A stretch of DNA of 64,000 nt, taken from assembly GCA_002104905.1 (NCBI GenBank), contig MCFE01000389.1, forward strand, positions 19,024 to 83,023, in the 5' to 3' direction. Origin of the DNA: Basidiobolus meristosporus CBS 931.73 (lineage: Eukaryota > Fungi > Basidiobolomycota). Numbering within the stretch: the stretch's first letter is position 1; every line of letters starts with the position of its first letter. Shown here one piece after another: positions 5,941-64,000 of the stretch. A program made the translations under genes and the position numbers. Below the pieces are notes generated by a model. The model was not told the origin of the DNA and did no database searches. It saw nothing but the letters and a program-made list of their open reading frames with translations.

Positions 5941-6289
5941 TGTTGAAATAATTAGGAGTCCACCTAATTATTAATATATTATGAACTAGCACTTAGTGAA
6001 ATGATATATTTCAGATTATCAACATGAAAATTAGTTTGTAAGATATTTACTAATTATTAGGAATTAGAGAAGTACAGAATTTTAGGAAAATCTGAAACTT
6101 GTCCAAATGAGCCGAAACTTGGCACATGTACTCCTGAGACTCCCCTAATAATGACCAAATAGTTGCATTTACGTAGTTCTGCAATAAGTATAAATACTGT
6201 GTTGCAACTCAATAAAACATCAAGTGAATATCATGTAAATCTTCTAATTCTCCAATTCACTTCCAATATATCTCTCTAATATTTCAACA
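5941..6289 (+). repeat. 3' LTR of Copia family A element
   Basis: Direct repeat of 2989-3337, preceded by a purine tract. Confidence 0.95.
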
Positions 6290-6329
6290 CACTCTCTACT
6301 ACTATGATCAATGGCACAATGGAACAAGT

Positions 6330-8050
6330 CTAATACCTTAATCTAAATTTTCATCACAACAATGTTGAAGTGGCTTTTGATTGGTTCCCGGCCAATTTGC
6401 TCACTTTCTGATTGCTGATACTCTATTGCCTCCTACATTTGTGTGCATTGATTAGCTTTTGCCTCTTTTTCACACTCCTTACTTCCTGACTCAACTGTTT
6501 CTCTTATTTTTCATGTGTGCAAACAGATTTATTTCTGTTGAAACTTCAGTTGTACCTCAACTGCCAGCTGTAGTGACCTATACAAGTCCCTATGCACTAC
6601 ATTATTACTAAGCCCAACCTCACACTCAACAAATTACTTCATTAAAAGCAACCACTCAATAAGTATTTTGCTGTAGGGCTCTGGTTCCACAACTTTGGTG
6701 GGAGCCCAAGGGCTTTATGCCACTGTTCATTCACTGGTTCCTGCATGTCCTGGTCTTCAGCCAGTACTGCAAGGTTTAGCACCTCATCTGCTAGTGTTTA
6801 CAATAAATCCTTGCAATATTTCAGTGTGCTTTCTTGAGCACTGCTCTTGAAGAAGTGCTGCAACCTCTTGGTGTGCCTATTAATGTTCCAAAATTTCACT
6901 GAAGGCATTGTGGTAGTCTTTTGAGCACATGACATTGTAGCCTTGTCTGTCAGTGGGATATCCACTCTGTCAACAATGGAGGATGTGGAGGCTGTGGTAT
7001 ACAAATTGCCATTTTCAGCATACTCATCTACCTTGCTGGAGTTTAGCTCAACTGGCTGGGCTTCCAACTCTTATGAAAGCAGCTTATTCAGTCAGGTCTG
7101 GGCTTGCGGCATTAATTTGTTAGAACTGCAGTTCTTTTGCATGCCTCCCTGTCTCAGGCTAGGTAGAGATTTTTCACAAGAGTTGGAAGCACAGCCAGTT
7201 GAGCTACACTCCAGCAAGGTAGATGAGTTCACTGAAAAAGGCAATTTGTATACCACAGCCTCTACATCCTCCATTGTTGACAGAGTGGATATCCCACTGA
7301 CAGACAAGGCTACAATGTCATGTGCTCAAAAGACTACCACAATGCCTTCAGTGAAATTTTGGAACATTAATAGGCACACCAAAAGGTTGCAGCACTTCTT
7401 CAAGAGCAGTGCTCAAGAAAGCACACTGAAATATTGCAAGGATTTATTGTAAACACTAGCAGATGAGGTGCTAAACCTTGCAGTACTGGCTGAAGACCAG
7501 GACATGTGGGAACCAGTGAATGAGCAGTAGCATAGAGCCATTAGACTTCTGCAAAGGTTACAGAACCAGTGCATAGAGCAGAAATACTTATTGAGTGATG
7601 GACTTTAATAGAGTTCCTTGTTTAGTGTGGGGTTGGGCTTAATGTAAGTGTAATGTATAGGGACTTATATAGGTCACCACAATGGGCAATTGAGGTACAA
7701 CTGAAGCTTCAATGGAAATAAATCAATTTGTACAGATGAAAACTAAGAGAAACAGTTGAGTCAGGAAGTAAGGAGTGTGTAAAAGAGGCAATAGCCAATC
7801 AATGCACACAAATGTTGGATCCAATAGAGCATCTGGGTTCAGAAAGTGAGCAAGTTGGCTGGGAACCAATCAAAAGCCACTTGTACATTGTTGTGACAAA
7901 TATCTTGACCAAGTTATTGTGAAATCTGGGGTGCAACTATTTTTTAACAGTCTCTAGATGGTGTCCTCATGGGATCAATACCTCTTAGTCACAGGACTTT
8001 AACTTTGTGATGGGTTTTTGACAGGATCATCTCAATAATTTTTCATAGGG
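6330..8050. repeat. Large inverted repeat made of two head-to-head copies of the CACTA-associated repeat (family C)
   Basis: About 6360-7075 is the reverse complement of about 7180-7900. The ORF track shows mirror peptides (6798-7067 minus; the end of 6943-7452 plus). A third diverged copy lies at about 15560-16390, and a terminus-like TTTCATAGGG ends at 8050. Confidence 0.9.
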
Positions 8051-8569
8051 TTATGTGGGCCTTGTCTCTGGATATTATTTCCATACTTCAGAGACTGTAT
8101 GGTGTTCTTCTACTTTTACATCAGGAAATGGCTTAACCCTTGATTATGAAATTAAGCTTCTTTAGCTCCTACCTTGCACAAAAGATACTGCATTCTCAGC
8201 ATGGGATGTTGACTACTCTGCATGCATTATCCACTCATCCTATCTCTAGAATATTCCCTGATTTCTCCAGGCCATTGTATCTATAGCATCAGCCACTCTA
8301 CCTAATTACCTCATTAATACTCTGGTATGAGCTGACAGATACTTGCAAGTACTGGTGGTGGTGATATTGGAATGATCATTTGTTGAATCTCTACTGGAGG
8401 TAATGCATTTAATACATCCTCATCAGACTGAGCATGATTGGCAGTTTGCAGCTCTGCAAAGGTTAATTCACTACTAGTGTGAGAGCCCAAGGAGTCAGTT
8501 TCATTACCTTCTATGGGCATAATGTCAACATTGTTCTTTTGGATGTAGTCTTGCTTGTTGTACAAAATG

Positions 8570-32561: not shown

Positions 32562-34823
32562 TTAGTAGAACAAAAGCTCGGTACTCTTCGGGAGGGCCCA
32601 ATGCTTGTCAGCCACCGCTTCCTCCAGTTTGTTGGTTCGGGTGGTGATTTTCTCCATGAGGGGGAGGAGGTTTTTGCAGGCTTTCTTGGCCTGTTCGTGC
32701 TCATCCGACTCCACATCTTTAACCGCCTCGGTAAGTTCAGCTATCAGTTCGTGGAAGCCGGAGAGCGTTTCTGATAGGTCGGTTAGAAGGGAGGTTTCAG
32801 CAGAAGCGTCTACGCCAATATCCGACATACACTTGGCCCCGAGCGCAAGCTCCTTTCTGTACTCGTAAGTGCTCGGTAGGATTTGTTGCTGGACCAAGGT
32901 TTTCAGCGTGTTGGCCTCCACGATCAAATCCTTGGCATACCGCTCCTTCATAATGTGGTATCTGGAGTTGAGTTCGGACTCGGTGAACACCCCGGTCTCC
33001 TCGACCAGCATCTTCTTCGATTCAGCAGTCATCAGCTGCTCAAATGCATCTGGAGAGTTCCTGAGGTTGGGAAGTCCGCGGCGTTCGGCCTCCTGCACCC
33101 ACTCATCGGAGTAGTTGTCCCGCTCGAAGCGGATGGGCTTGGTGGAGGCGATGTACTTCTTGATGACGTTGAGTTTGTCAGCGTCCGAGACCATCGGCTT
33201 GTCACCCTTCTCCTTGATCAGTTCCTCGGTGATCTCGTTGAGGGCAGAGGCCACAGCCGCGTTGAGTACGGTGACTGGGAACGAGGGGGACTGTTTGGAT
33301 CCAACCGCACGGAACTCGAACTTGTTCCCGGTGAAGGCGAATGGAGATGTACGATTACGATCGGTCAGATCACGGGTGATGCTGGGAAGTGAGGCAACCT
33401 TGACGTCGAGACTAGTGCCTCCAAGCTTCACCGATTGGATATGGGGTCGGGAGAAAGTCTTGATAGGGCGGGCCTCCTCCACCGCATCAAGGACCTCGCT
33501 CAACTGCTCGCCCAGGAAGGCGGACACGATTCCAGGCGGCGCTTCAGCCGCTCCAAGGCGATGATCGTTCGACGCACTGGAAATGGTGGTGCGCAGAAGA
33601 CCACCATGCTTGTGCACCGCGTGAAGTACGGCAACAAGGAACAGAAGGAATTGGTAGTTGGTCTCTGGCTTGACCGTGGGGTCAAGCAGGTTCTCCCCGC
33701 GGTCCGTGGAGAGCGACCAGTTGCAGTGCTTGCCAGATCCATTGATTCCCTTGAACGGCTTCTCGTGGAATAGGACCTTCAGGTTGTGTCTGTGCGCCAC
33801 CTTGTGGAGCACCTCCATGGTGATCAAGTTGTGATCAACCGCGATCGAGGCCTCCTCGAAGATTGGCGCCATCTCAAACTGCGATGGGGCAACCTCGTTG
33901 TGTCTGGTCTTGATTGGGACCCCGAGTTTGTAACTCTCCAGCTCAGTCTCGCTCAAGGTGGCGATCACTCTGCTTGGCATCTGGCCAAAGTAGTGGTCCT
34001 CCATCTGTTGGTGCTTCGGCGGAAGGTTACCGAAGAGAGCGCGACCACAGATCTTGAGATCTGGACGAAGAGCATATAATGCACGGTCAATCAGGAAGAA
34101 CTCCTGCTCCGTTCCGAGCGTGGAGTACACGCGCTGGACATATGGTGGCACGCCGGCTGGGACAGGCTTGATGAGGTTCAAGAGGCGGCAGGCGGCCTTG
34201 GACACGGCCTCACTGGACCTGAGCAGCACTGTCTTCTCATCCAAGGCATCTCCGTTGTATGAGATGAACACCGAGGGAATGTACAGGATTGAGGTGTTGT
34301 GGGGACCGGGCTGGATGAACATGGGACTGGTGGTGTCCCACACTGTGTAACCTCTGGCCTCGAATGTGGTTCTCATTCCCCCGGATGGGAAGCTTGAGGC
34401 ATCGGGCTCCGCTTGGAGCAGCTGGGTTCCTGAAAATGAATCAATAGCATGGACATCCTCACCATTAGGTCCATGTGTAGATTTGAGCGTAAGGAAGCAG
34501 TCGTGCTTTTCAGCAGTTGTTCCAGTTTGAGGCTGGAACCAGTGAGTGAAGTGGGTGGCACCGCGCTCAGTGGCCCAGATACGAACAGCATGAGCAATAG
34601 CATCGGCGGTAGCTTTGTCCAAAGTTTGACGACCCTTGACCTGCCTGATGAATTGGGCGAAGACAGGCTTCGGCAGCGCTTTGGACATGGACTTGAGATT
34701 GAACACGTTCTCACCAAAGATCTCGGCAACGGAAATCGCCTTTCCATGAGTAGTGGGGAAATCGATCTTGCGAGGATTTCGTTTCACCCCTTCCAGGATT
34801 GCGTTGGTTCGTGCTTGATTCAT
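32562..34823 (-). CDS. glnN: Glutamine synthetase type III (copy 1), intronless, 753 aa
   Basis: GSIII motifs TAEKHD, EPDASSFPSGG-R-TFEARGYT-WD-TSP, GTEQEFFLID, EDHYFG, RHNEVAP-QFE, HEKPF-G-NGSGKH-NWS, NDHRLGA-EAPP and DRNRTSPFAFTGNKFEFRAVGS. Confidence 0.96.
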   Translation of the reverse strand: MNQARTNAILEGVKRNPRKIDFPTTHGKAISVAEIFGENVFNLKSMSKALPKPVFAQFIRQVKGRQTLDKATADAIAHAVRIWATERGATHFTHWFQPQTGTTAEKHDCFLTLKSTHGPNGEDVHAIDSFSGTQLLQAEPDASSFPSGGMRTTFEARGYTVWDTTSPMFIQPGPHNTSILYIPSVFISYNGDALDEKTVLLRSSEAVSKAACRLLNLIKPVPAGVPPYVQRVYSTLGTEQEFFLIDRALYALRPDLKICGRALFGNLPPKHQQMEDHYFGQMPSRVIATLSETELESYKLGVPIKTRHNEVAPSQFEMAPIFEEASIAVDHNLITMEVLHKVAHRHNLKVLFHEKPFKGINGSGKHCNWSLSTDRGENLLDPTVKPETNYQFLLFLVAVLHAVHKHGGLLRTTISSASNDHRLGAAEAPPGIVSAFLGEQLSEVLDAVEEARPIKTFSRPHIQSVKLGGTSLDVKVASLPSITRDLTDRNRTSPFAFTGNKFEFRAVGSKQSPSFPVTVLNAAVASALNEITEELIKEKGDKPMVSDADKLNVIKKYIASTKPIRFERDNYSDEWVQEAERRGLPNLRNSPDAFEQLMTAESKKMLVEETGVFTESELNSRYHIMKERYAKDLIVEANTLKTLVQQQILPSTYEYRKELALGAKCMSDIGVDASAETSLLTDLSETLSGFHELIAELTEAVKDVESDEHEQAKKACKNLLPLMEKITTRTNKLEEAVADKHWALPKSTELLFY

Positions 34824-35067
34824 TCTATTCTTAGGATTGATATGGAAAAAAGAGATTGGATTGCTGAAGGGGTTTATTGATGTTATTTATTGGCAACGAC
34901 GCACATTTATATGAAACAAACGGCCAGAAATAGAAAGCTTCTTAAATTCACAGTTGGCACTTCAGTGTTTCTTATGGGCATATGATTACCGTAAAAAATC
35001 GATGGTCAGATGGGCTGCTGTGTAAGTTCAACATAGACCCGTGTCTGAGGTGATTACGGCCCATTCC

Positions 35068-35453
35068 CTATCTTACCTAATCTCTGGCAGTACGGAAATC
35101 TGGGGATGGGACTGTCATGGTTGATAGGGAAATATCGCCCAATTGATAGGTAACAGAGTCTCTTATCTATGTTACTGTCCCCATATCACATTACCAAAGA
35201 GTTGGGCATGATTGCAATCGACCATTGCACAACGTGTGATTATAGGTTGAAGTCATATGATTCATTAAAGTAGGCTGGCTATTTCCAGAGTCAATCACAA
35301 TGGATGATCGATCATCACCGATACGAGCGATTAATTGGTTGATCGATCTGTCCAGGAGGCTTAGCAAACGTCGAAACCAAGGAAAGGGTGGACAGGAAAG
35401 CCTGGATTTACACATATAATGAGTATAGGACTTGGCTGGGGTCTTATCTATCA
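35068..35453. promoter_or_regulatory. Cluster of six HGATAR boxes in the bidirectional GSIII promoter
   Basis: AGATAG (rc 35068-73), TGATAG (35122-27 and 35144-49), AGATAA (rc 35163-68 and 35444-49) and TGATAG (rc 35448-53). TATA-like elements lie near 34905-34912 (minus) and 35757-35764 (plus). Confidence 0.5.
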
Positions 35454-35852
35454 GACGCGCAACCAAGGGGCACCATCCATGAAATCGACCGAGTACCATA
35501 TTCAGAAATATCGAGGGTTTAAGGGTTCACCAACTAGATCATTTCTGGAAAAAGCAGTATAAACATGGGATTCTCTAATTCAGGGAAAGAATATGAACTC
35601 ATGCTTCGCCCCTCCCCCTAGTGGACAACCCATTTGACCATATGTAATGAATTCGTAGTCAATGGGTTCTTCACAACTAATCACAATTGTAACCAATCAG
35701 TGGGCCAAAGTGCAGTTGCGCAAAGGTCTATCATGGAATCGCCGTCCACTAAAATACTATAAAAGTATACCTGACAAGTATGCTACCACACGCATCAATC
35801 CCCTTTGTCTCTATTTCAGAAGGCCACTTTTCTATTCTGATCTGCTTTTGTA

Positions 35853-38123
35853 ATGAGTAGTCCACGCGTAGTTGCACTTCTTGATAACGTTAAGAGGCCA
35901 ACAAGAAAGATCGACTTCCCAACCACCGGAGTCAGCAAGAAGTCTATCAGCGTATCTGAGATTTACGGGGAGAATGTGTTTACCCTGAAGTCCATGTCCA
36001 AGGCGTTACCCAAGCCAATCTTTGCTCAGTTCATTAAGCAGGTGAAGGGTCGCCAAACTTTGGACAAAGCTACCGCCGATGCTATTGCTCATGCTGTTCG
36101 TATCTGGGCCACTGAGCGCGGCGCCACCCACTTCACTCACTGGTTCCAGCCTCAAACTGGAACAACTGCTGAAAAGCACGACTCCTTCCTCACTTTAAGA
36201 TCTATTCATGGTCCCACAGGTGAAGAAGTCCACGCTATGGACTCGTTTTCAGGAACCCAGCTGCTCCAAGCGGAGCCCGATGCCTCAAGCTTCCCATCCG
36301 GGGGAATGAGAACCACATTCGAGGCCAGAGGCTACACAGTGTGGGACACCACCAGTCCCATGTTCATCCAGCCCGGTCCCCACAACACCTCAATCCTGTA
36401 CATTCCCTCGGTGTTCATCTCATACAACGGAGATGCCTTGGATGAGAAGACAGTGCTGCTCAGGTCCAGTGAGGCCGTGTCCAAGGCCGCCTGCCGCCTC
36501 TTGAACCTCATCAAGCCTGTCCCAGCCGGCGTGCCACCATATGTCCAGCGCGTGTACTCCACGCTCGGAACGGAGCAGGAGTTCTTCCTGATTGACCGTG
36601 CATTATATGCTCTTCGTCCAGATCTCAAGATCTGTGGTCGCGCTCTCTTCGGTAACCTTCCGCCGAAGCACCAACAGATGGAGGACCACTACTTTGGCCA
36701 GATGCCAAGCAGAGTGATCGCCACCTTGAGCGAGACTGAGCTGGAGAGTTACAAACTCGGGGTCCCAATCAAGACCAGACACAACGAGGTTGCCCCATCG
36801 CAGTTTGAGATGGCGCCAATCTTCGAGGAGGCCTCGATCGCGGTTGATCACAACTTGATCACCATGGAGGTGCTCCACAAGGTGGCGCACAGACACAACC
36901 TGAAGGTCCTATTCCACGAGAAGCCGTTCAAGGGAATCAATGGATCTGGCAAGCACTGCAACTGGTCGCTCTCCACGGACCGCGGGGAGAACCTGCTTGA
37001 CCCCACGGTCAAGCCAGAGACCAACTACCAATTCCTTCTGTTCCTTGTTGCCGTACTTCACGCGGTGCACAAGCATGGTGGTCTTCTGCGCACCACCATT
37101 TCCAGTGCGTCGAACGATCATCGCCTTGGAGCGGCTGAAGCGCCGCCTGGAATCGTGTCCGCCTTCCTGGGCGAGCAGTTGAGCGAGGTCCTTGATGCGG
37201 TGGAGGAGGCCCGCCCTATCAAGACTTTCTCCCGACCCCATATCCAATCGGTGAAGCTTGGAGGCACTAGTCTCGACGTCAAGGTTGCCTCACTTCCCAG
37301 CATCACCCGTGATCTGACCGATCGTAATCGTACATCTCCATTCGCCTTCACCGGGAACAAGTTCGAGTTCCGTGCGGTTGGATCCAAACAGTCCCCCTCG
37401 TTCCCAGTCACTGTACTCAACGCGGCTGTGGCCTCTGCCCTCAACGAGATCACCGAGGAACTGATCAAGGAGAAGGGTGACAAGCCGATGGTCTCGGACG
37501 CTGACAAACTCAACGTCATCAAGAAGTACATCGCCTCCACCAAGCCCATCCGCTTCGAGCGGGACAACTACTCCGATGAGTGGGTGCAGGAGGCCGAACG
37601 CCGCGGACTTCCCAACCTCAGGAACTCTCCAGATGCATTCGAGCAGCTGATGACTGCTGAATCGAAGAAGATGCTGGTCGAGGAGACCGGGGTGTTCACC
37701 GAGTCTGAACTCAACTCCAGATACCATATTTTGAACGAACGGTATGCCAAGGATTTGATTGTGGAGGCCAACACGCTGAAAACCTTGGTCCAGCAACAAA
37801 TCTTACCCAGCGCCTATGAGTACAGAAAAGATCTCGCTCTGTCGGCCTCGGCGCTGGATAACTTGGGTATCGATGCGGCAGCAGAAAAGAAGCTTCTCAC
37901 GCAGATGAGCTCGATCGTAAATGAGCTCCAGGATAAGACCGAGGAGTTGGTCAAATCCGTCGATACTGTCGAACAAAGCGACCATCACGACCAAGCACAC
38001 GGGGCATGCAAGCAGATCCTTCCCACCATGGGCATCGTACGCTCCCTTGCGGATAAGTTGGAAGAGTTGGTGGCCGACAAGTTCTGGAGCTTGCCAAAGA
38101 ATACGGAATTACTATTTTACTGA
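35853..38123 (+). CDS. glnN: Glutamine synthetase type III (copy 2), intronless, 756 aa
   Basis: Same GSIII motif set as copy 1; uninterrupted ORF. Confidence 0.96.
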   Translation: MSSPRVVALLDNVKRPTRKIDFPTTGVSKKSISVSEIYGENVFTLKSMSKALPKPIFAQFIKQVKGRQTLDKATADAIAHAVRIWATERGATHFTHWFQPQTGTTAEKHDSFLTLRSIHGPTGEEVHAMDSFSGTQLLQAEPDASSFPSGGMRTTFEARGYTVWDTTSPMFIQPGPHNTSILYIPSVFISYNGDALDEKTVLLRSSEAVSKAACRLLNLIKPVPAGVPPYVQRVYSTLGTEQEFFLIDRALYALRPDLKICGRALFGNLPPKHQQMEDHYFGQMPSRVIATLSETELESYKLGVPIKTRHNEVAPSQFEMAPIFEEASIAVDHNLITMEVLHKVAHRHNLKVLFHEKPFKGINGSGKHCNWSLSTDRGENLLDPTVKPETNYQFLLFLVAVLHAVHKHGGLLRTTISSASNDHRLGAAEAPPGIVSAFLGEQLSEVLDAVEEARPIKTFSRPHIQSVKLGGTSLDVKVASLPSITRDLTDRNRTSPFAFTGNKFEFRAVGSKQSPSFPVTVLNAAVASALNEITEELIKEKGDKPMVSDADKLNVIKKYIASTKPIRFERDNYSDEWVQEAERRGLPNLRNSPDAFEQLMTAESKKMLVEETGVFTESELNSRYHILNERYAKDLIVEANTLKTLVQQQILPSAYEYRKDLALSASALDNLGIDAAAEKKLLTQMSSIVNELQDKTEELVKSVDTVEQSDHHDQAHGACKQILPTMGIVRSLADKLEELVADKFWSLPKNTELLFY

Positions 38124-38479
38124 GACCCCCTAATGGATGAAATATGTACCAACAAATATGCCGCAAATCGCACACTATCCACACTGCTCATCTGCAGTTT
38201 CCCAAAAAAATCCCTTGTAAAGTCCCATGTGTGATATCGGTGATCTCTAAAGATCACCATCTGGGAACTGTAATATCTTAATCCAAATGAAAATAAATCA
38301 TGACAGATACGCGTCAGGTAAAGCCCATAATATAACCCAAAAAAATGACGTCCATTCTGGATTGTCAGCAATATCTGGAAAAATCACCAACAATTCGGGG
38401 AATTTTCACAATCACTTAAACAACTCTGTTGAATACTCTCTTGCAGTTACCAACTTTGAAGTGACCTCCTTAAAGCAGA

Positions 38480-39329
38480 ATGTACCTTTTTCTTTTTTCC
38501 AACCCATTCAAAGGCAAACCTTACTAAATCGTGCACTTTTCCCCCTTAAGGTCTAGCTACTGGGTTTCGAACCAGAAATTCTGGTGTAAGTACTGTAAGA
38601 TCTATATAACAGACAACAAACCGGTATGTGTTGAAACGACCCCTTTCACGATGGACTCGGGAACATGGAACACTAAGCATAGTAATATTCTCGACACCAT
38701 AGAGTAGGCAAATCCACGATAATGGCAAGAAGCACAAGGATAATGTCAAGTATTATCTTAGGGAAGTGGATAAGAAATCCGAGGAAAACCGTAGGGAGCA
38801 AGACATGATGAAGATGGAATTGCGACGCATTGAAAGAGTAAGCTGGTCAGAGGACAAACCATTCACCTTGCTTGATGCTGATCTCTTTGTGACTCTTTAG
38901 GCGGCATACAAACAATACGCTCAAGACATTATTGATGGTGCCCCACCTCCAGCAATTCCTGTCAAAAGACCACCACCTCCACCTATTCCTCAATCTTCTG
39001 CATATTCGGCACCAGTACCACCACCCGAAGAGGAGAACCCCGCTGCAGACGAAGGCCCGCAAATCGGTCCATGGGTTCCAGTAGTAAAGCCCAAGCCGAC
39101 GAATATCGTCAAACCTAAAGAAACTTCGGATGTTCCATATGTCGAAGACGACGAGGATGATGGTGAGGATTTGAGTGGCTTCAAAATCGTGGAAAAGACA
39201 CACCCCGTTGATACGGAAGAACCTGCGGACGAAAAGGAGGAGCCCACTACCTCGCTTTTCAAAAAGAGGAAGAGCGACTCGGCCGGTAAGAAGAGAAATA
39301 TCAGGAAAAAATCAGGCACGGCTGAGTAA
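38480..39329 (+). CDS. U1-type zinc-finger protein (WBP4/FBP21-like N-terminus), 4 exons; not in the ORF track
   Basis: Spliced translation MSSYWVSNQKFWCKYCKIYITDNKP|SRQIHDNGKKHKDNV...RRIER|AAYKQYAQDI with a Pro-rich and acidic/basic tail. Introns at 38482-38550, 38624-38702 and 38838-38900. Confidence 0.85.
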
Positions 39330-59874: not shown

Positions 59875-62800
59875 AGGGGGGGAGACAGTCACCAACAGGT
59901 GAAATCTTTATTTCAGTTGAAACAAAGAAGCCAGCGCTACTGTTGTAGCTTTGATACAAGAGTGTGTAGCTGAGGGGAATTAGTAGGTAAGTTAATAAGA
60001 AGTGATGATAGTTCTTCAGTGCTCAAGACACTGTTCAGTGGGAAGGGGGGTAGCAAGAGAGGTAAGAATGACTTGTGAACAACATTAATGAGGGGAATGT
60101 GATAAGGATTGATATTCATCATAAAGGGAGTGTGCTGCTGCAGATATTGCTGCCAAAGGTCTGTCAAGTACTTCAGGTAGGCCAGCTTGGGTTTTTCTGA
60201 CTGCAGAATATAGTGAGCAAACTTCTTGACTTCAGGATCTCCAAGTATAGTTCTCCAGCAGGAGCCAGGTGTAGTGTGGTGTGTTCTCTTCCAGGCCTTA
60301 ATCAGTGGGTTGTTGCAGTTGTGAAGTCTGAGGTATAATCTGGTTCTAAGGTAGAGAAGTCTGATCTTATAGGGCATAAACCCAAAAGCACCAAGAATAG
60401 CATGTCTGTAGGGGCATTCAGGCAAATGAGGCACCAAGGAGGTTATGCACCATACTGCAAACTTGTCAAGCTTAGTGCAGTCTCTAGAAGTAAGAGAGAG
60501 AAGTGGTAAGCCAAATTCCAGGACAGGGAAGACAAACTGCTTGAGTAGAAGGAGGCAGCTGGGAGCTGAAGTTGTAGGAGGAGTAACAGCCAGTAGCTTG
60601 TGGAGTGCCTGTCTTGCCAGGATAATTCTCTTCTTCAGGTGTGCTCCAGAGTCTAGTCCAGTAGGAAGGAAAGGAAAGCCAAGATATGTAGCAGAAACCT
60701 GAGCAGGTAGAGTGGAGTTCTCCAAGTTGAAGGGAGAGCCCAAAGGTACTGTCTTTGCAATGGAAAGCTGGAGATTATTCTTCTGCAGATACTGGTGGAT
60801 GGTCTGGGAGTCTTGTTGCACATTGGAGGAGGATATTCTGATGTCATCAGCAAAGAGAGTAACCAGGCAGTCAGCTGAGAGTCTTGGGAAATCATTCAGG
60901 AAGATGGCAAACAGTATAGGACCAAGCACAGAGCCTTGAACCACTCCATTAGGAACTGAGAACACAGCTGATTGCTCACTTGGGTGCAGAATTCTTGCTT
61001 GTGGATCCAGAAACAGAGACCTGACAAGGAGGGTGAGAGAGGTACTGGAGAAGCATTGCAACTTGGACCAAAGCAGATTTCTGTCAACTGAATCAAAGGC
61101 CTTAGTAATATCAAACAGAACAGAGGGATACTTGCACTGGAGAGAGTGATCTTGGCTAAGTATGACTGCATATTCCAAGGAGAGGCCAGGAACAAAGCCA
61201 AACTGTGCAGGATGAAACTTGAGGGAGTCAGAGTAGAGCTCCTGAGCAAGCAGAAGCTCAAACACCTTTCTGCAGGTGGGCAGCAGAGATATTGGCCTGT
61301 AGGAGCTAGGATCCAGGTGCTTTCCTTGACCCTTGTACAGTGGCAGAACATTTGCAAAGGACCATTCCTCAGGAGTAGAAAGCTGGGCTGAGCATTGCTG
61401 AAACAGTGGAAGCAGAAGTGCAGACATGGCCTTGGTACTAGTCTTCAGAAGCTCATAGGAGATTGTGTCCACACCTGGAGCAGTAGAGTTGGGAAGCCTC
61501 TTGAGCACATTATGGATTCTCCTTTGATCAAGTGCAAGTGGGATGGGCAGAGTCTTGAAGTCAGGATGAAAGCCAGGAGTTGAGTACTGCTTTGTAGAGA
61601 AGAAGATGTTAGCCAGCTGTTCTGTTGAAGGTAACTTCCTGGAAGAGGGCCTCATTGCCCTGTAGAGTCTTGATACTGTTCTTGTTATAGAGTTGGAAGA
61701 TTGCAGAGGCAAAGAACTCATAATATGATCCCAGAGCTGAGTATGCAGAGTGTGGTGAATTGCCTTGGAGTGGTGTATTGCTGTCAGGAGGAGTTTCTCT
61801 GTTTTTGGGTTAGGGAAACTCAGGTAGCTTTGTTGCAGGGCTGAAACAATGGATTCCCATTTTCTTGAGGTAACAGCAGTAGTCTTGCATGGCAGTGAGA
61901 GGGAGGCAGACACCAGAATCAGATGCTTCACAAAGAGCCAGGCAAAGTTGAGATCATCAGGCAGAGAAAGTAGCAAACTGGCAAGCTTCAAGTAGTTCCC
62001 AAAGTCTTTCTTCTGATTCTTGGTAGCTTTGTGGGTGAGCACAGTAAGTTTTGCAGCTTCTTCTTCACAACTGGTTGCATAGAAAGGGACCAGGCTGGAT
62101 GGTCAGAGGCTCTCAAGGATCCTAGCTCAGCTCCAGAGAATTGCTTAACTTCATTCACAAAGTAGAGGGCAGCAGCAGAAGGGCAGATCCAGTCAACACA
62201 TCTTTTCTCAGATTGAGCACCTAGTGCTAGCAGGTGGCTTTCTCTCAGGAAGTTCAGTAGGAATGTAGACCTTGGCTTCATTCTTGCAGCCGGAGTAGTC
62301 TTGTTCTCAGGATGGGGAATGTTGAGATCTCCAAGCAAGATAACAGGTGTTGATATAGATTGTTGGTATTGCCGAACCTTCTGGCATATAACTTGCACTT
62401 CCTGAAGGGCTAGACTTGGAGGCAGATAGCAGAGCACCAGACTGATAGTTGGCAACTGGAGAGCAGCACAGTAAGGGGAGTAAAGAGGAACACAGAGCTG
62501 AGGAGTATTGATGGTAGAAGAGATGAAGCAGATAGAGGAGGTATTCTTTGTTCTAGGAGTAGAAAAGCAATATAGATTAGTCAAAAGTATAGAGGGTAGC
62601 TGGACATCAATCAAACACAGGAGGGAAAATCTTGAAAGAAGTCTCTCTAGAGTTGGTCTTGATGGCTGTATGCTGTTGCAGTTAAGCAACAGAACTTCAG
62701 GTAGTCAGGCAGAGGTTGTAGCTTCTTCAGAGGCAGCATTAACAATGTGACCTGCAGAGTCCCAGAGCTCTTCAAATGGTGCATCACTTAAGTCAGCAAG

Positions 62801-63430
62801 GAGGGAAATGGCATGGTTCTTGAGGAAGTATGCCACATCATAGGAGGGGGCTTGTCTCTTGATGGCAGCAAAGAAAGACAGAATGGCAACATGAGCTGGA
62901 GGCTTGTTGAACAGTAGAGAGTCAGAGGATTCAGATTCTTCAGGCACTATCTTGAAGTCAGTTTTCAGCCAGTTAAGGTTCTTCTCCACAAAGGCAACAA
63001 ATGGGTCAGCAATGTTTTGGTCTAGAATAACCTCCAGAATCTTCCCTTTTCTCCAGGCCAGGTTGACAATTCTTGAGAGCTGAATATTGCATGCCTTGAG
63101 TGCTTTCCTGATGTTGGAAATGGGGGTCCAGGGAACTTGCTTCAAGTACACCACAGTCCAGGTAGAAGCTGGTGGTAGGTTTGCTGGGGGCTTGTAAGTC
63201 CTTCTGTGTTGCAATGGAGCTGCAGTAGTCAGATTGGAGTCCACATTCTCAGTAGAAGGTTTTCTTGATGTGTCTTGCTGAATAGTACTGGAGCTGGATG
63301 TGCTGATAATTCTTAGGGTGTAGGTGTTATAGTAAGGGCTAGGAAAAGGTTAGAAGAACAGGGGGTCTGGGGGACGCAGTCCCCTAGAGAATAAAAAAGC
63401 AGGGGGTTTGGGGGATGCAATCCCCCATAC
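59875..63430 (-). mobile_element. Near-complete non-LTR retrotransposon (LINE; ORF1-like + APE endonuclease + RT) next to the telomere
   Basis: ORF1-like region 62705-63350; APE motifs LLLNCNS, ILLGDLN and SDH (61988-62689); RT ORF 59937-62042. Short 3' UTR with AATAAA and a hairpin; 5' boundary approximate. Confidence 0.92.
59937..62042 (-). CDS. LINE reverse transcriptase ORF (701 aa open frame)
   Basis: APGVDTI, YRPISLL, QFGF, FDITKAFDSV, GVVQGSVLGPILFAIFLND, LFADD and YLGF. Confidence 0.88.
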   Translation of the reverse strand: MLTHKATKNQKKDFGNYLKLASLLLSLPDDLNFAWLFVKHLILVSASLSLPCKTTAVTSRKWESIVSALQQSYLSFPNPKTEKLLLTAIHHSKAIHHTLHTQLWDHIMSSLPLQSSNSITRTVSRLYRAMRPSSRKLPSTEQLANIFFSTKQYSTPGFHPDFKTLPIPLALDQRRIHNVLKRLPNSTAPGVDTISYELLKTSTKAMSALLLPLFQQCSAQLSTPEEWSFANVLPLYKGQGKHLDPSSYRPISLLPTCRKVFELLLAQELYSDSLKFHPAQFGFVPGLSLEYAVILSQDHSLQCKYPSVLFDITKAFDSVDRNLLWSKLQCFSSTSLTLLVRSLFLDPQARILHPSEQSAVFSVPNGVVQGSVLGPILFAIFLNDFPRLSADCLVTLFADDIRISSSNVQQDSQTIHQYLQKNNLQLSIAKTVPLGSPFNLENSTLPAQVSATYLGFPFLPTGLDSGAHLKKRIILARQALHKLLAVTPPTTSAPSCLLLLKQFVFPVLEFGLPLLSLTSRDCTKLDKFAVWCITSLVPHLPECPYRHAILGAFGFMPYKIRLLYLRTRLYLRLHNCNNPLIKAWKRTHHTTPGSCWRTILGDPEVKKFAHYILQSEKPKLAYLKYLTDLWQQYLQQHTPFMMNINPYHIPLINVVHKSFLPLLLPPFPLNSVLSTEELSSLLINLPTNSPQLHTLVSKLQQ

Positions 63431-63755
63431 TGCTCTTATACTCTTTAAATTCCCGTTGGATTACTTTTCTCTCATTCTTGGTTCTGGTCCCTTAGGGTTA
63501 GAATTCCTCCTCCTAACCCTTATCACCCTAACCATAAATATTTTTACCCTACAATTGGCACATTGTCTGCTCATATGGTGGGCATGTCTGGGCCAATATT
63601 TGTCTCCCTATACTGTCCATATGCTCTGTATAAGTCTTGATGACTATTTAATTAATAAATTGTTATTTTTAATATATATCTAATAATTAATGGGATTCAT
63701 CCCAATCTGACCACAATCCCATATTTTGATAAGCTTTGGGCACCATAAATTGCGC

Positions 63756-64000
63756 TTAGGGTTAGGGTTAGGGTTAGGGTTAGGGTTAGGGTTAGGGTTA
63801 GGGTTAGGGTTAGGGTTAGGGTTAGGGTTAGGGTTAGGGTTAGGGTTAGGGTTAGGGTTAGGGTTAGGGTTAGGGTTAGGGTTAGGGTTAGGGTTAGGGT
63901 TAGGGTTAGGGTTAGGGTTAGGGTTAGGGTTAGGGTTAGGGTTAGGGTTAGGGTTAGGGTTAGGGTTAGGGTTAGGGTTAGGGTTAGGGTTAGGGTTAGG
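63756..64000 (+). repeat. Telomeric (TTAGGG)n array, about 41 units, to the end of the window
   Basis: Perfect TTAGGG tandem repeat, G-rich strand running 5'->3' toward the end. Confidence 0.99.

Follow-up and report, generated by a model that had tools for sequence, protein, structure and literature searches.

A head-to-head pair of type III glutamine synthetase genes in Basidiobolus meristosporus with a probably gene-converted catalytic core and long-separated ends

Our subject is a pair of type III glutamine synthetase (GSIII) genes, here called A and B, in the fungus Basidiobolus meristosporus CBS 931.73. The genes lie head-to-head in a stretch of 64,000 nucleotides (the window; assembly GCA_002104905.1, contig MCFE01000389.1, with all coordinates below given as window positions) and are transcribed divergently from a 1029-bp spacer. 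Their catalytic bodies are nearly identical and stand next to ends that are strongly diverged. The best explanation, which we hold with high confidence, is an old inverted duplication whose core has repeatedly been converted from one arm to the other, with the ends escaping. As far as sequence can tell, the case is one of long-term partial concerted evolution by interlocus gene conversion, which is a well-known process.

The two genes were aligned codon by codon, and the divergence of each segment is expressed as its third-position difference. The inverted repeat covers 32835-34742 and 35940-37847 (1908 nt, 96% identical), and the segments of the genes (Table 1) have third-position differences from 0.01 to 0.71, which is far from a uniform divergence. 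The lowest value is that of the core, whose five differences in 1482 nt are all silent third positions (codons 160, 520, 596, 618 and 625); the initial annotation had correctly described them as silent, with a count of four. A second tract at codons 65-112 has a value of 0.04, and one of its three differences is non-synonymous (C/S at codon 111). The island between these two tracts reaches 0.68 and contains five amino-acid changes. Beyond the core the value rises to 0.28 in codons 626-665 and to 0.71 in the last 90 codons. The picture given in the initial annotation, of a near-identical core beside a diverged N-terminus, island and tail, is thereby borne out. The differences between A and B are clustered far beyond chance: the longest identical run measures 1079 nt, whereas 10,000 permutations reached no more than 128, and the longest identical run of third positions is 359, with a permutation maximum of 70.

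Table 1. The two GSIII genes, their spacer and the segments of the mosaic (window positions)
Feature	Position	Strand	Description	Evidence
GSIII copy A	32562-34823	minus	753 aa, uninterrupted open reading frame (ORF), stop 32562-32564	ORF list, Pfam
GSIII copy B	35853-38123	plus	756 aa, uninterrupted ORF	ORF list, Pfam
Diverged 5' end of B, codons 1-64	35853-36044	plus	Partner in A 34638-34823; third-position difference 0.65, 2-codon indel	
Second converted tract in B, codons 65-112	36045-36188	plus	Partner in A 34494-34637; 3 differences/144 nt (2.1%)	
Unconverted 57-bp island in B, codons 113-131	36189-36245	plus	Partner in A 34437-34493; 17/57 nt differ	
Converted core in B, codons 132-625	36246-37727	plus	5 silent differences from A/1482 nt	
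Converted core in A	32955-34436	minus	Partner of 36246-37727	
Graded 3' boundary zone in B, codons 626-665	37728-37847	plus	Partner in A 32835-32954; 13% diverged	
B-type C-terminal tail, last 90 codons	37848-38123	plus	48% amino-acid identity to A tail	
A-type C-terminal tail	32562-32834	minus	71% amino-acid identity to B. ranarum A-side tail P0127	
Spacer with both divergent promoters	34824-35852	.	1029 bp, unique in window	

Both copies are full-length paralogues with no introns, as had been proposed, in that their frames are uninterrupted and align from end to end with known GSIII proteins. The match to the Bacteroides fragilis enzyme (PDB 3o6x_A) has an E-value of 1e-176 and runs from residue 29 to 755 of the query and from 22 to 727 of the chain, and both copies align over their full length with hundreds of fungal GSIII sequences of 745-760 aa. 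The domains GSIII_N (PF12437), Gln-synt_C (PF00120) and Gln-synt_C-ter (PF18318) are found in each copy by Pfam, with E-values of 3e-67, 2e-20 and 1e-35. The catalytic residues D129 and S132 of B. fragilis align to D143 and S146, which are invariant across 32 fungal sequences; the roles of these Asp and Ser residues in GSIII have been described (bioRxiv 10.1101/2022.04.05.486999). By domains, end-to-end homology and catalytic residues A and B are type III glutamine synthetases, with their activity and assembly predicted. The public gene models at both places (32562-34823 and 35853-39329) look wrong. That of A (P0001) begins at Met46 and has 708 aa. That of B (ORX90232.1, 929 aa) follows the ORF for its first 742 residues, after which a predicted intron bypasses the stop and the model extends to about 39329, apparently joined to the gene that follows; in B. 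ranarum, zf-U1 is a gene of its own at that place.

The history of the pair can be read from comparison with Basidiobolus ranarum. In that species the core is present as a contig of 1868 bp with one open frame (L004), which is equivalent to window positions 35958-37822, is 81% identical to both arms and spans just the inverted repeat. Two further contigs, L006 and L007, both open with the final 111 nt of L004 before they part, which on the face of the contigs is what an assembly graph yields when a repeat collapses into a single node with two exits. The fork lies at the equivalent of window position 37822. One exit (L006) leads into zf-U1, RPL13e, RPL32e and DCP1, which are the neighbours of B in B. 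meristosporus, and the other (L007) leads into photolyase, the neighbour of A. The tail fragments of B. ranarum, P0126 and P0127, were found by searching with only the last 131 residues of B.

Over the last 90 codons, orthologues from the same side of the locus share 71-75% of their amino acids (75% for the tail of B and the B-side tail P0126), compared to 46-50% for pairs of paralogues, and the non-synonymous divergence (dN) is 0.17 between orthologues and 0.51-0.56 between paralogues. The maximum-likelihood tree of the tails joins the A-side tails of the two species (BmerA, BranA) with support of 100/99 and places the four tails together (98/96) as sister to paralogue 2. There are 16 type-specific sites in the tail and 0 that are species-specific. 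The core behaves in the opposite way, with 281 sites at which A and B agree and differ from B. ranarum, against 5 at which A and B differ from each other; at third positions the distance between species (0.83) is about 81 times that between paralogues (0.010), and the amino-acid identity of the core between species is 97%. In the 40-codon boundary zone the proportion of synonymous differences (pS) is 0.37 within B. meristosporus, 0.24 within B. ranarum and about 1 between species, where the Nei-Gojobori estimate comes out slightly above 1 and is read solely as saturated. Since the tails group by side and the cores by species, the duplication is older than the species split and the core has been homogenised independently since then. 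Judged from tail dN, the duplication probably predates the B. meristosporus/B. ranarum split by roughly three-fold.

Additional support comes from a further strain with the same species label, differing by 9.5%, whose run (X4) gives a single contig of 1847 nt that corresponds to 35988-37831 at 90.5% identity and ends at the repeat boundaries. Together with the B. ranarum fork, this contig points to independent homogenisation in more than one lineage, with popping of bubbles by the short-read assemblers possible in both. The proposal of an old inverted duplication with a repeatedly homogenised core and escaping ends, made initially from the window, is thus upheld by the collapsed core of B. ranarum, with its tails grouping by side and the core by species.

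The history that we propose would begin with the head-to-head duplication of GSIII in the Basidiobolus lineage, after the split from a third paralogue and before the separation of B. meristosporus and B. ranarum. Non-reciprocal recombination between the arms would then have repeatedly overwritten the constrained catalytic core of one copy with that of the other. Tracts of unequal age and extent would give rise to the mosaic, with the core at 0.3%, codons 65-112 at 2%, the boundary zone at 13%, and the island, N-terminus and tail saturated. Because these divergences are unequal, there would have been several conversion events in this lineage alone, and the tract at 36045-36188, being 2.1% diverged, would be older than that of the core. 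At the ends, which evolve fast and most of all in the last 90 codons, divergence may have gone too far for heteroduplex to form; it would then act as a barrier, and the ends evolve like any orthologues, under purifying selection. What we infer from the pattern as a whole is this barrier, the recurrence of the events and the expression of both copies in the same cells.

Several points weigh against this history. No conversion event was directly observed, and there is no clear signature of GC-biased conversion, the third-position GC content (GC3) of the core being 0.72 here and 0.44 in B. ranarum. The head-to-head arrangement and the 5' ends were not recovered in B. ranarum, where a search for N-terminal fragments of the genes gave no candidate, so the conservation of the palindrome in that species rests on the fork and on synteny. 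Short-read assemblers can pop bubbles, and the cores of B. ranarum and X4 are accordingly to be taken as near-identical rather than proven identical. Finally, the run taken below as RNA (X3) is recorded as 'DNA?', and its nature is deduced from its coverage pattern.

The identical core could alternatively be an artefact of assembly or polishing, in which the consensus of one copy overwrote that of the other or a collapsed repeat was wrongly resolved. Palindromes pose difficulties for assemblers, and a haplotig-like second contig of the same assembly (L003, described below) begins inside the core. Given the reads, however, we consider an artefact to be very improbable indeed. Two runs of the same strain (X1 and X2), which are probably the assembly's own sample and not fully independent of it, give contigs that break exactly where A and B differ densely, with one continuous core piece (32977-34436, depth 295-316) and separate pieces for each diverged segment (copy-specific depths 133-245). 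The island pieces of A (34407-34528) and of B (36154-36275), at depths of 133 and 154, are about half as deep as the shared pieces (255-323), and separate pieces at this depth argue against a polishing artefact. The five residual differences in the core all fall at silent third positions, the A/B difference at 33042 is visible as a variant in the reads, and the same fork structure is seen in the unrelated assembly of B. ranarum. A different possibility is that the arms also cross over, which would flip the 1.2-1.4-kb middle (the spacer and both 5' ends) and put each promoter and N-terminus module onto the other tail. The arms offer 1.48 kb of 99.7% identical inverted sequence with repeat ends just 1.2 kb apart, some crossovers usually accompany long-term conversion, the start of L003 inside the core shows assembler trouble there, and yeast provides a precedent of homogenised inverted paralogues with recurrent re-inversion (PMC9731477). 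The assembly, though, has a single orientation, and no read, contig or joint with the other orientation was seen among short-read contigs that cannot span the core. We therefore regard such flipping as unlikely, and it would be similarly surprising to find the middle in two orientations among nuclei or strains, giving four GSIII isoforms from two genes. If true, flipping could quite generally give rise to variation in isoforms and regulation in Basidiobolus.

The role of selection has to be weighed separately for the diverged patches near the N-terminus and for the tail. The peptide of B in the island is the same as that of B. ranarum at 19/19 residues, and residues 36-64 are likewise identical to the B. 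ranarum core contig. Both this contig and that of X4 run through the island and the N-terminal patch with B-type sequence, the X4 island being B-like at about 14/17 distinguishing sites. The A-type patches would then be old sequence, given their saturated synonymous sites, that survives only in copy A of this strain, and B-to-A conversion appears to have removed them from the relatives, unless an assembly bubble was popped. The island itself aligns to a variable, indel-prone loop or hairpin (a 7-residue indel relative to 3o6x) with a low predicted local distance difference test (pLDDT) score in an AlphaFold model whose mean pLDDT is 65.9 and which is confident in the C-terminal third only. Catalytic Asp143 and Ser146 lie 12 residues past the island, within the core. 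The initial suggestion of selection, as applied to the island and N-terminal patch, is not supported, since B-type sequence is found there in B. ranarum and X4 and the island is an indel-prone loop. An identification of the island with the peripheral beta-hairpin clasp of the Ostreococcus tauri enzyme was also rejected, as that hairpin sits elsewhere in the chain (Gly446-Asp474).

For the tail the case is more balanced. The tail of B is modelled by AlphaFold as two long helices and a short terminal one (676-708, 714-739 and 750-755, pLDDT 86-95), preceded by a helix of 54 residues whose end coincides with the boundary. The central tunnel of bacterial GSIII is lined by the last long helices, and it is the least conserved regions that make the quaternary contacts (bioRxiv 10.1101/2022.04.05.486999); we infer that the A and B tails correspond to these tunnel-lining helices. 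Selection could remove converted tails if the tails, and perhaps the N-termini, are functionally distinct, for example in ring assembly or regulation, and the boundary would then be held by selection. In favor of this, each tail type is conserved across species with its type-specific sites and with an orthologue dN of 0.17 at saturated synonymous divergence (dS), the tail is a confidently predicted helical unit that may match the tunnel helices, and the position of the 3' boundary agrees to within about 25-45 bp among three lineages (37803-37847 in the strain studied, with B. ranarum at 37822 and X4 at 37831). However, the tail just evolves faster than any other part of fungal GSIII, with 24-45% identity between lineages compared to 71-79% for the core, and the orthologue identities of 71-75% in the tail and 97% in the core would fit neutral divergence with rejection of mismatches equally well. 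Plain orthology already predicts type-specific sites, and the saturation of dS allows no test for positive selection. We think selection against converted tails somewhat doubtful, though less so than the flipping of the middle. The initial annotation had placed the ends perhaps under selection; judged from substitution rates, purifying selection on each tail type is shown, and for selection against conversion the data speak no more than for a neutral barrier, which explains the boundary equally well.

Two isoforms are likely to be made from the pair. The RNA-like run X3 has a depth in the thousands on both genes and about 0 over 34950-35750 in the spacer, with a contig that starts at 35827 with adaptor there, and it contains the tails specific to A and to B, at depths of 5206 and 3746; its contigs give no expression levels. 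From this run, both copies appear to be transcribed. The intact genes, the unrelated promoters and the presence of both tails in one RNA-like library would together mean two forms of GSIII that share their catalytic body and differ in their helical C-termini. That these join in mixed A/B oligomers, as first proposed, is speculation, for which the only datum is the presence of both copy-specific tails in this one run.

The spacer holds the divergent promoters, and comparing it with itself and with the window by BLAST gave no arm-to-arm similarity within it beyond a 14-nt palindrome, so the spacer is not itself palindromic. Being unique and non-palindromic, it leaves A and B with promoters that are unrelated in sequence. 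The 14-nt palindrome is perfect, lies near the spacer midpoint (35303-35316) and is the sole self-complementary element there. There are seven HGATAR sites of the GATA-factor type in the spacer, against 4.1 expected (35068-35163, 35444-35453 and 35728), four of them within 100 bp. This cluster is suggestive of a nitrogen-regulated divergent promoter, but enrichment of GATA (AreA-type) sites was set aside as not significant, since 244/2000 shuffles and about 4% of equal-sized windows also reach seven.

Another aspect of the locus is how the copies have kept their CpG dinucleotides. The observed/expected ratio is 0.81-0.82 in A and B and 0.72-0.87 in neighbouring genes. It is 0.07 in the transposon field at 1-30000 (39% GC), which has a TpG/CpA excess of 1.37, and 0.03 in the terminal long interspersed nuclear element (LINE; 59875-64000). 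Repeat-induced point mutation (RIP), which turns C into T at CpA, is indicated in repeats by a TpA/ApT ratio over about 0.89 together with (CpA+TpG)/(ApC+GpT) under about 1.03; the transposon field has values of 0.82 and 1.52 and so lies outside both thresholds. The decay of the transposons is CpG-specific and resembles methylation-driven deamination rather than RIP. It is true, then, that both copies keep their CpGs, but the accompanying idea that a repeat defence spares them loses its footing, as the decay is CpG-specific and nothing suggests that duplicates are sensed.

Some further observations concern the assembly and the wider gene family. The second contig L003 (MCFE01000897.1, 1-6534) is equivalent to window positions 34047-27502 and starts inside the GSIII core. 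It repeats the 3' part of A and the photolyase at about 99.8-100% identity, and beyond about 29800, in the transposon field, it is diverged and rearranged with up to 28% mismatches per 250 nt. L003 represents a haplotig or else a segmental duplication of very recent date. Single-base variants are present in the same-strain contigs at 34461 (A>G in X2, partly in X3), 34065 (A>C in X2) and 35592 (T>C in X2 and X3); these are not A/B differences and may reflect alleles or haplotigs. Both species also have a third, older GSIII paralogue (P0125, P0002 and P0124), at L005 (MCFE01000536.1) 6001-8313 and at L001 10001-12316. It has one intron, is about 72% identical to A and B, and adjoins C2-domain and GH46 genes in both species. 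Clustering at 90% identity puts its proteins from B. meristosporus and B. ranarum together, with two members in B. ranarum (P0002 and P0124). We considered the third paralogue (P0125 on L005; P0002) as an ectopic donor of the diverged patches and rejected it, as its identity is just 31% in the island and 35-43% in the tail.

The process itself is already known and this is a clear but ordinary case of gene conversion, whose main value is in the dating and in the caution for annotation and assembly. From an early-diverging fungus, it offers a clean and dated case of partial concerted evolution, in which at least two species have homogenised the core independently while the C-terminal helices stayed separate orthologues. 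Core sequence will thus mislead on the age of paralogues, on gene trees and on the number of copies in Basidiobolus, whose genomes are large and duplicate-rich. Short-read assemblies collapse such pairs, and the B. ranarum locus is split over at least three contigs. Additionally, two isoforms that differ almost only in their variable C-terminal helices would be a natural experiment on the role of these helices. Fungal GSIII is almost unstudied; one functional report, on Paraphysoderma (PMC9224648), was found.

At the level of the enzyme, we see no difference by sequence from known GSIII. A and B have the same three Pfam domains as the proteins of B. fragilis (3O6X) and O. tauri (7U6O), and like 3O6X they align over the full length with the catalytic Asp and Ser and the metal and ATP motifs in invariant columns. 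What can be compared with other systems is the mode of evolution. Long-term concerted evolution of gene pairs has been described in mammals, over more than 100 My (PMC2720389), and in Caenorhabditis paralogues (PMC3966223). As in those pairs, the paralogues of one species are closer within the tract than the orthologues are, the flanks reveal the true and older date of the duplication, and the tracts are graded and patchy. Unlike them, the pair here is inverted and divergent, encodes a housekeeping enzyme of nitrogen assimilation in an early-diverging fungus, and has a tract confined to the catalytic body with nearly the same 3' edge in three lineages. Inverted duplicates with a short spacer that are kept at more than 99% identity by intrachromosomal conversion are also known from the palindromes of sex chromosomes (PMC3403216). 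Those palindromes measure tens to thousands of kb, are identical over the whole arm and are sex-limited, whereas the arms here are 2 kb and both gene ends escape. By analogy, the nearest fungal parallel would be the flip/flop region of Saccharomyces chromosome XIV (YNL018C/YNL034W, PMC9731477), where inverted paralogues have likewise been homogenised within each species over millions of years. In Saccharomyces the whole 4-kb repeat is homogenised and a 24-kb interval has been shown to invert recurrently, whereas in Basidiobolus only the gene cores are homogenised and the interval consists of a 1 kb promoter region and both 5' ends.

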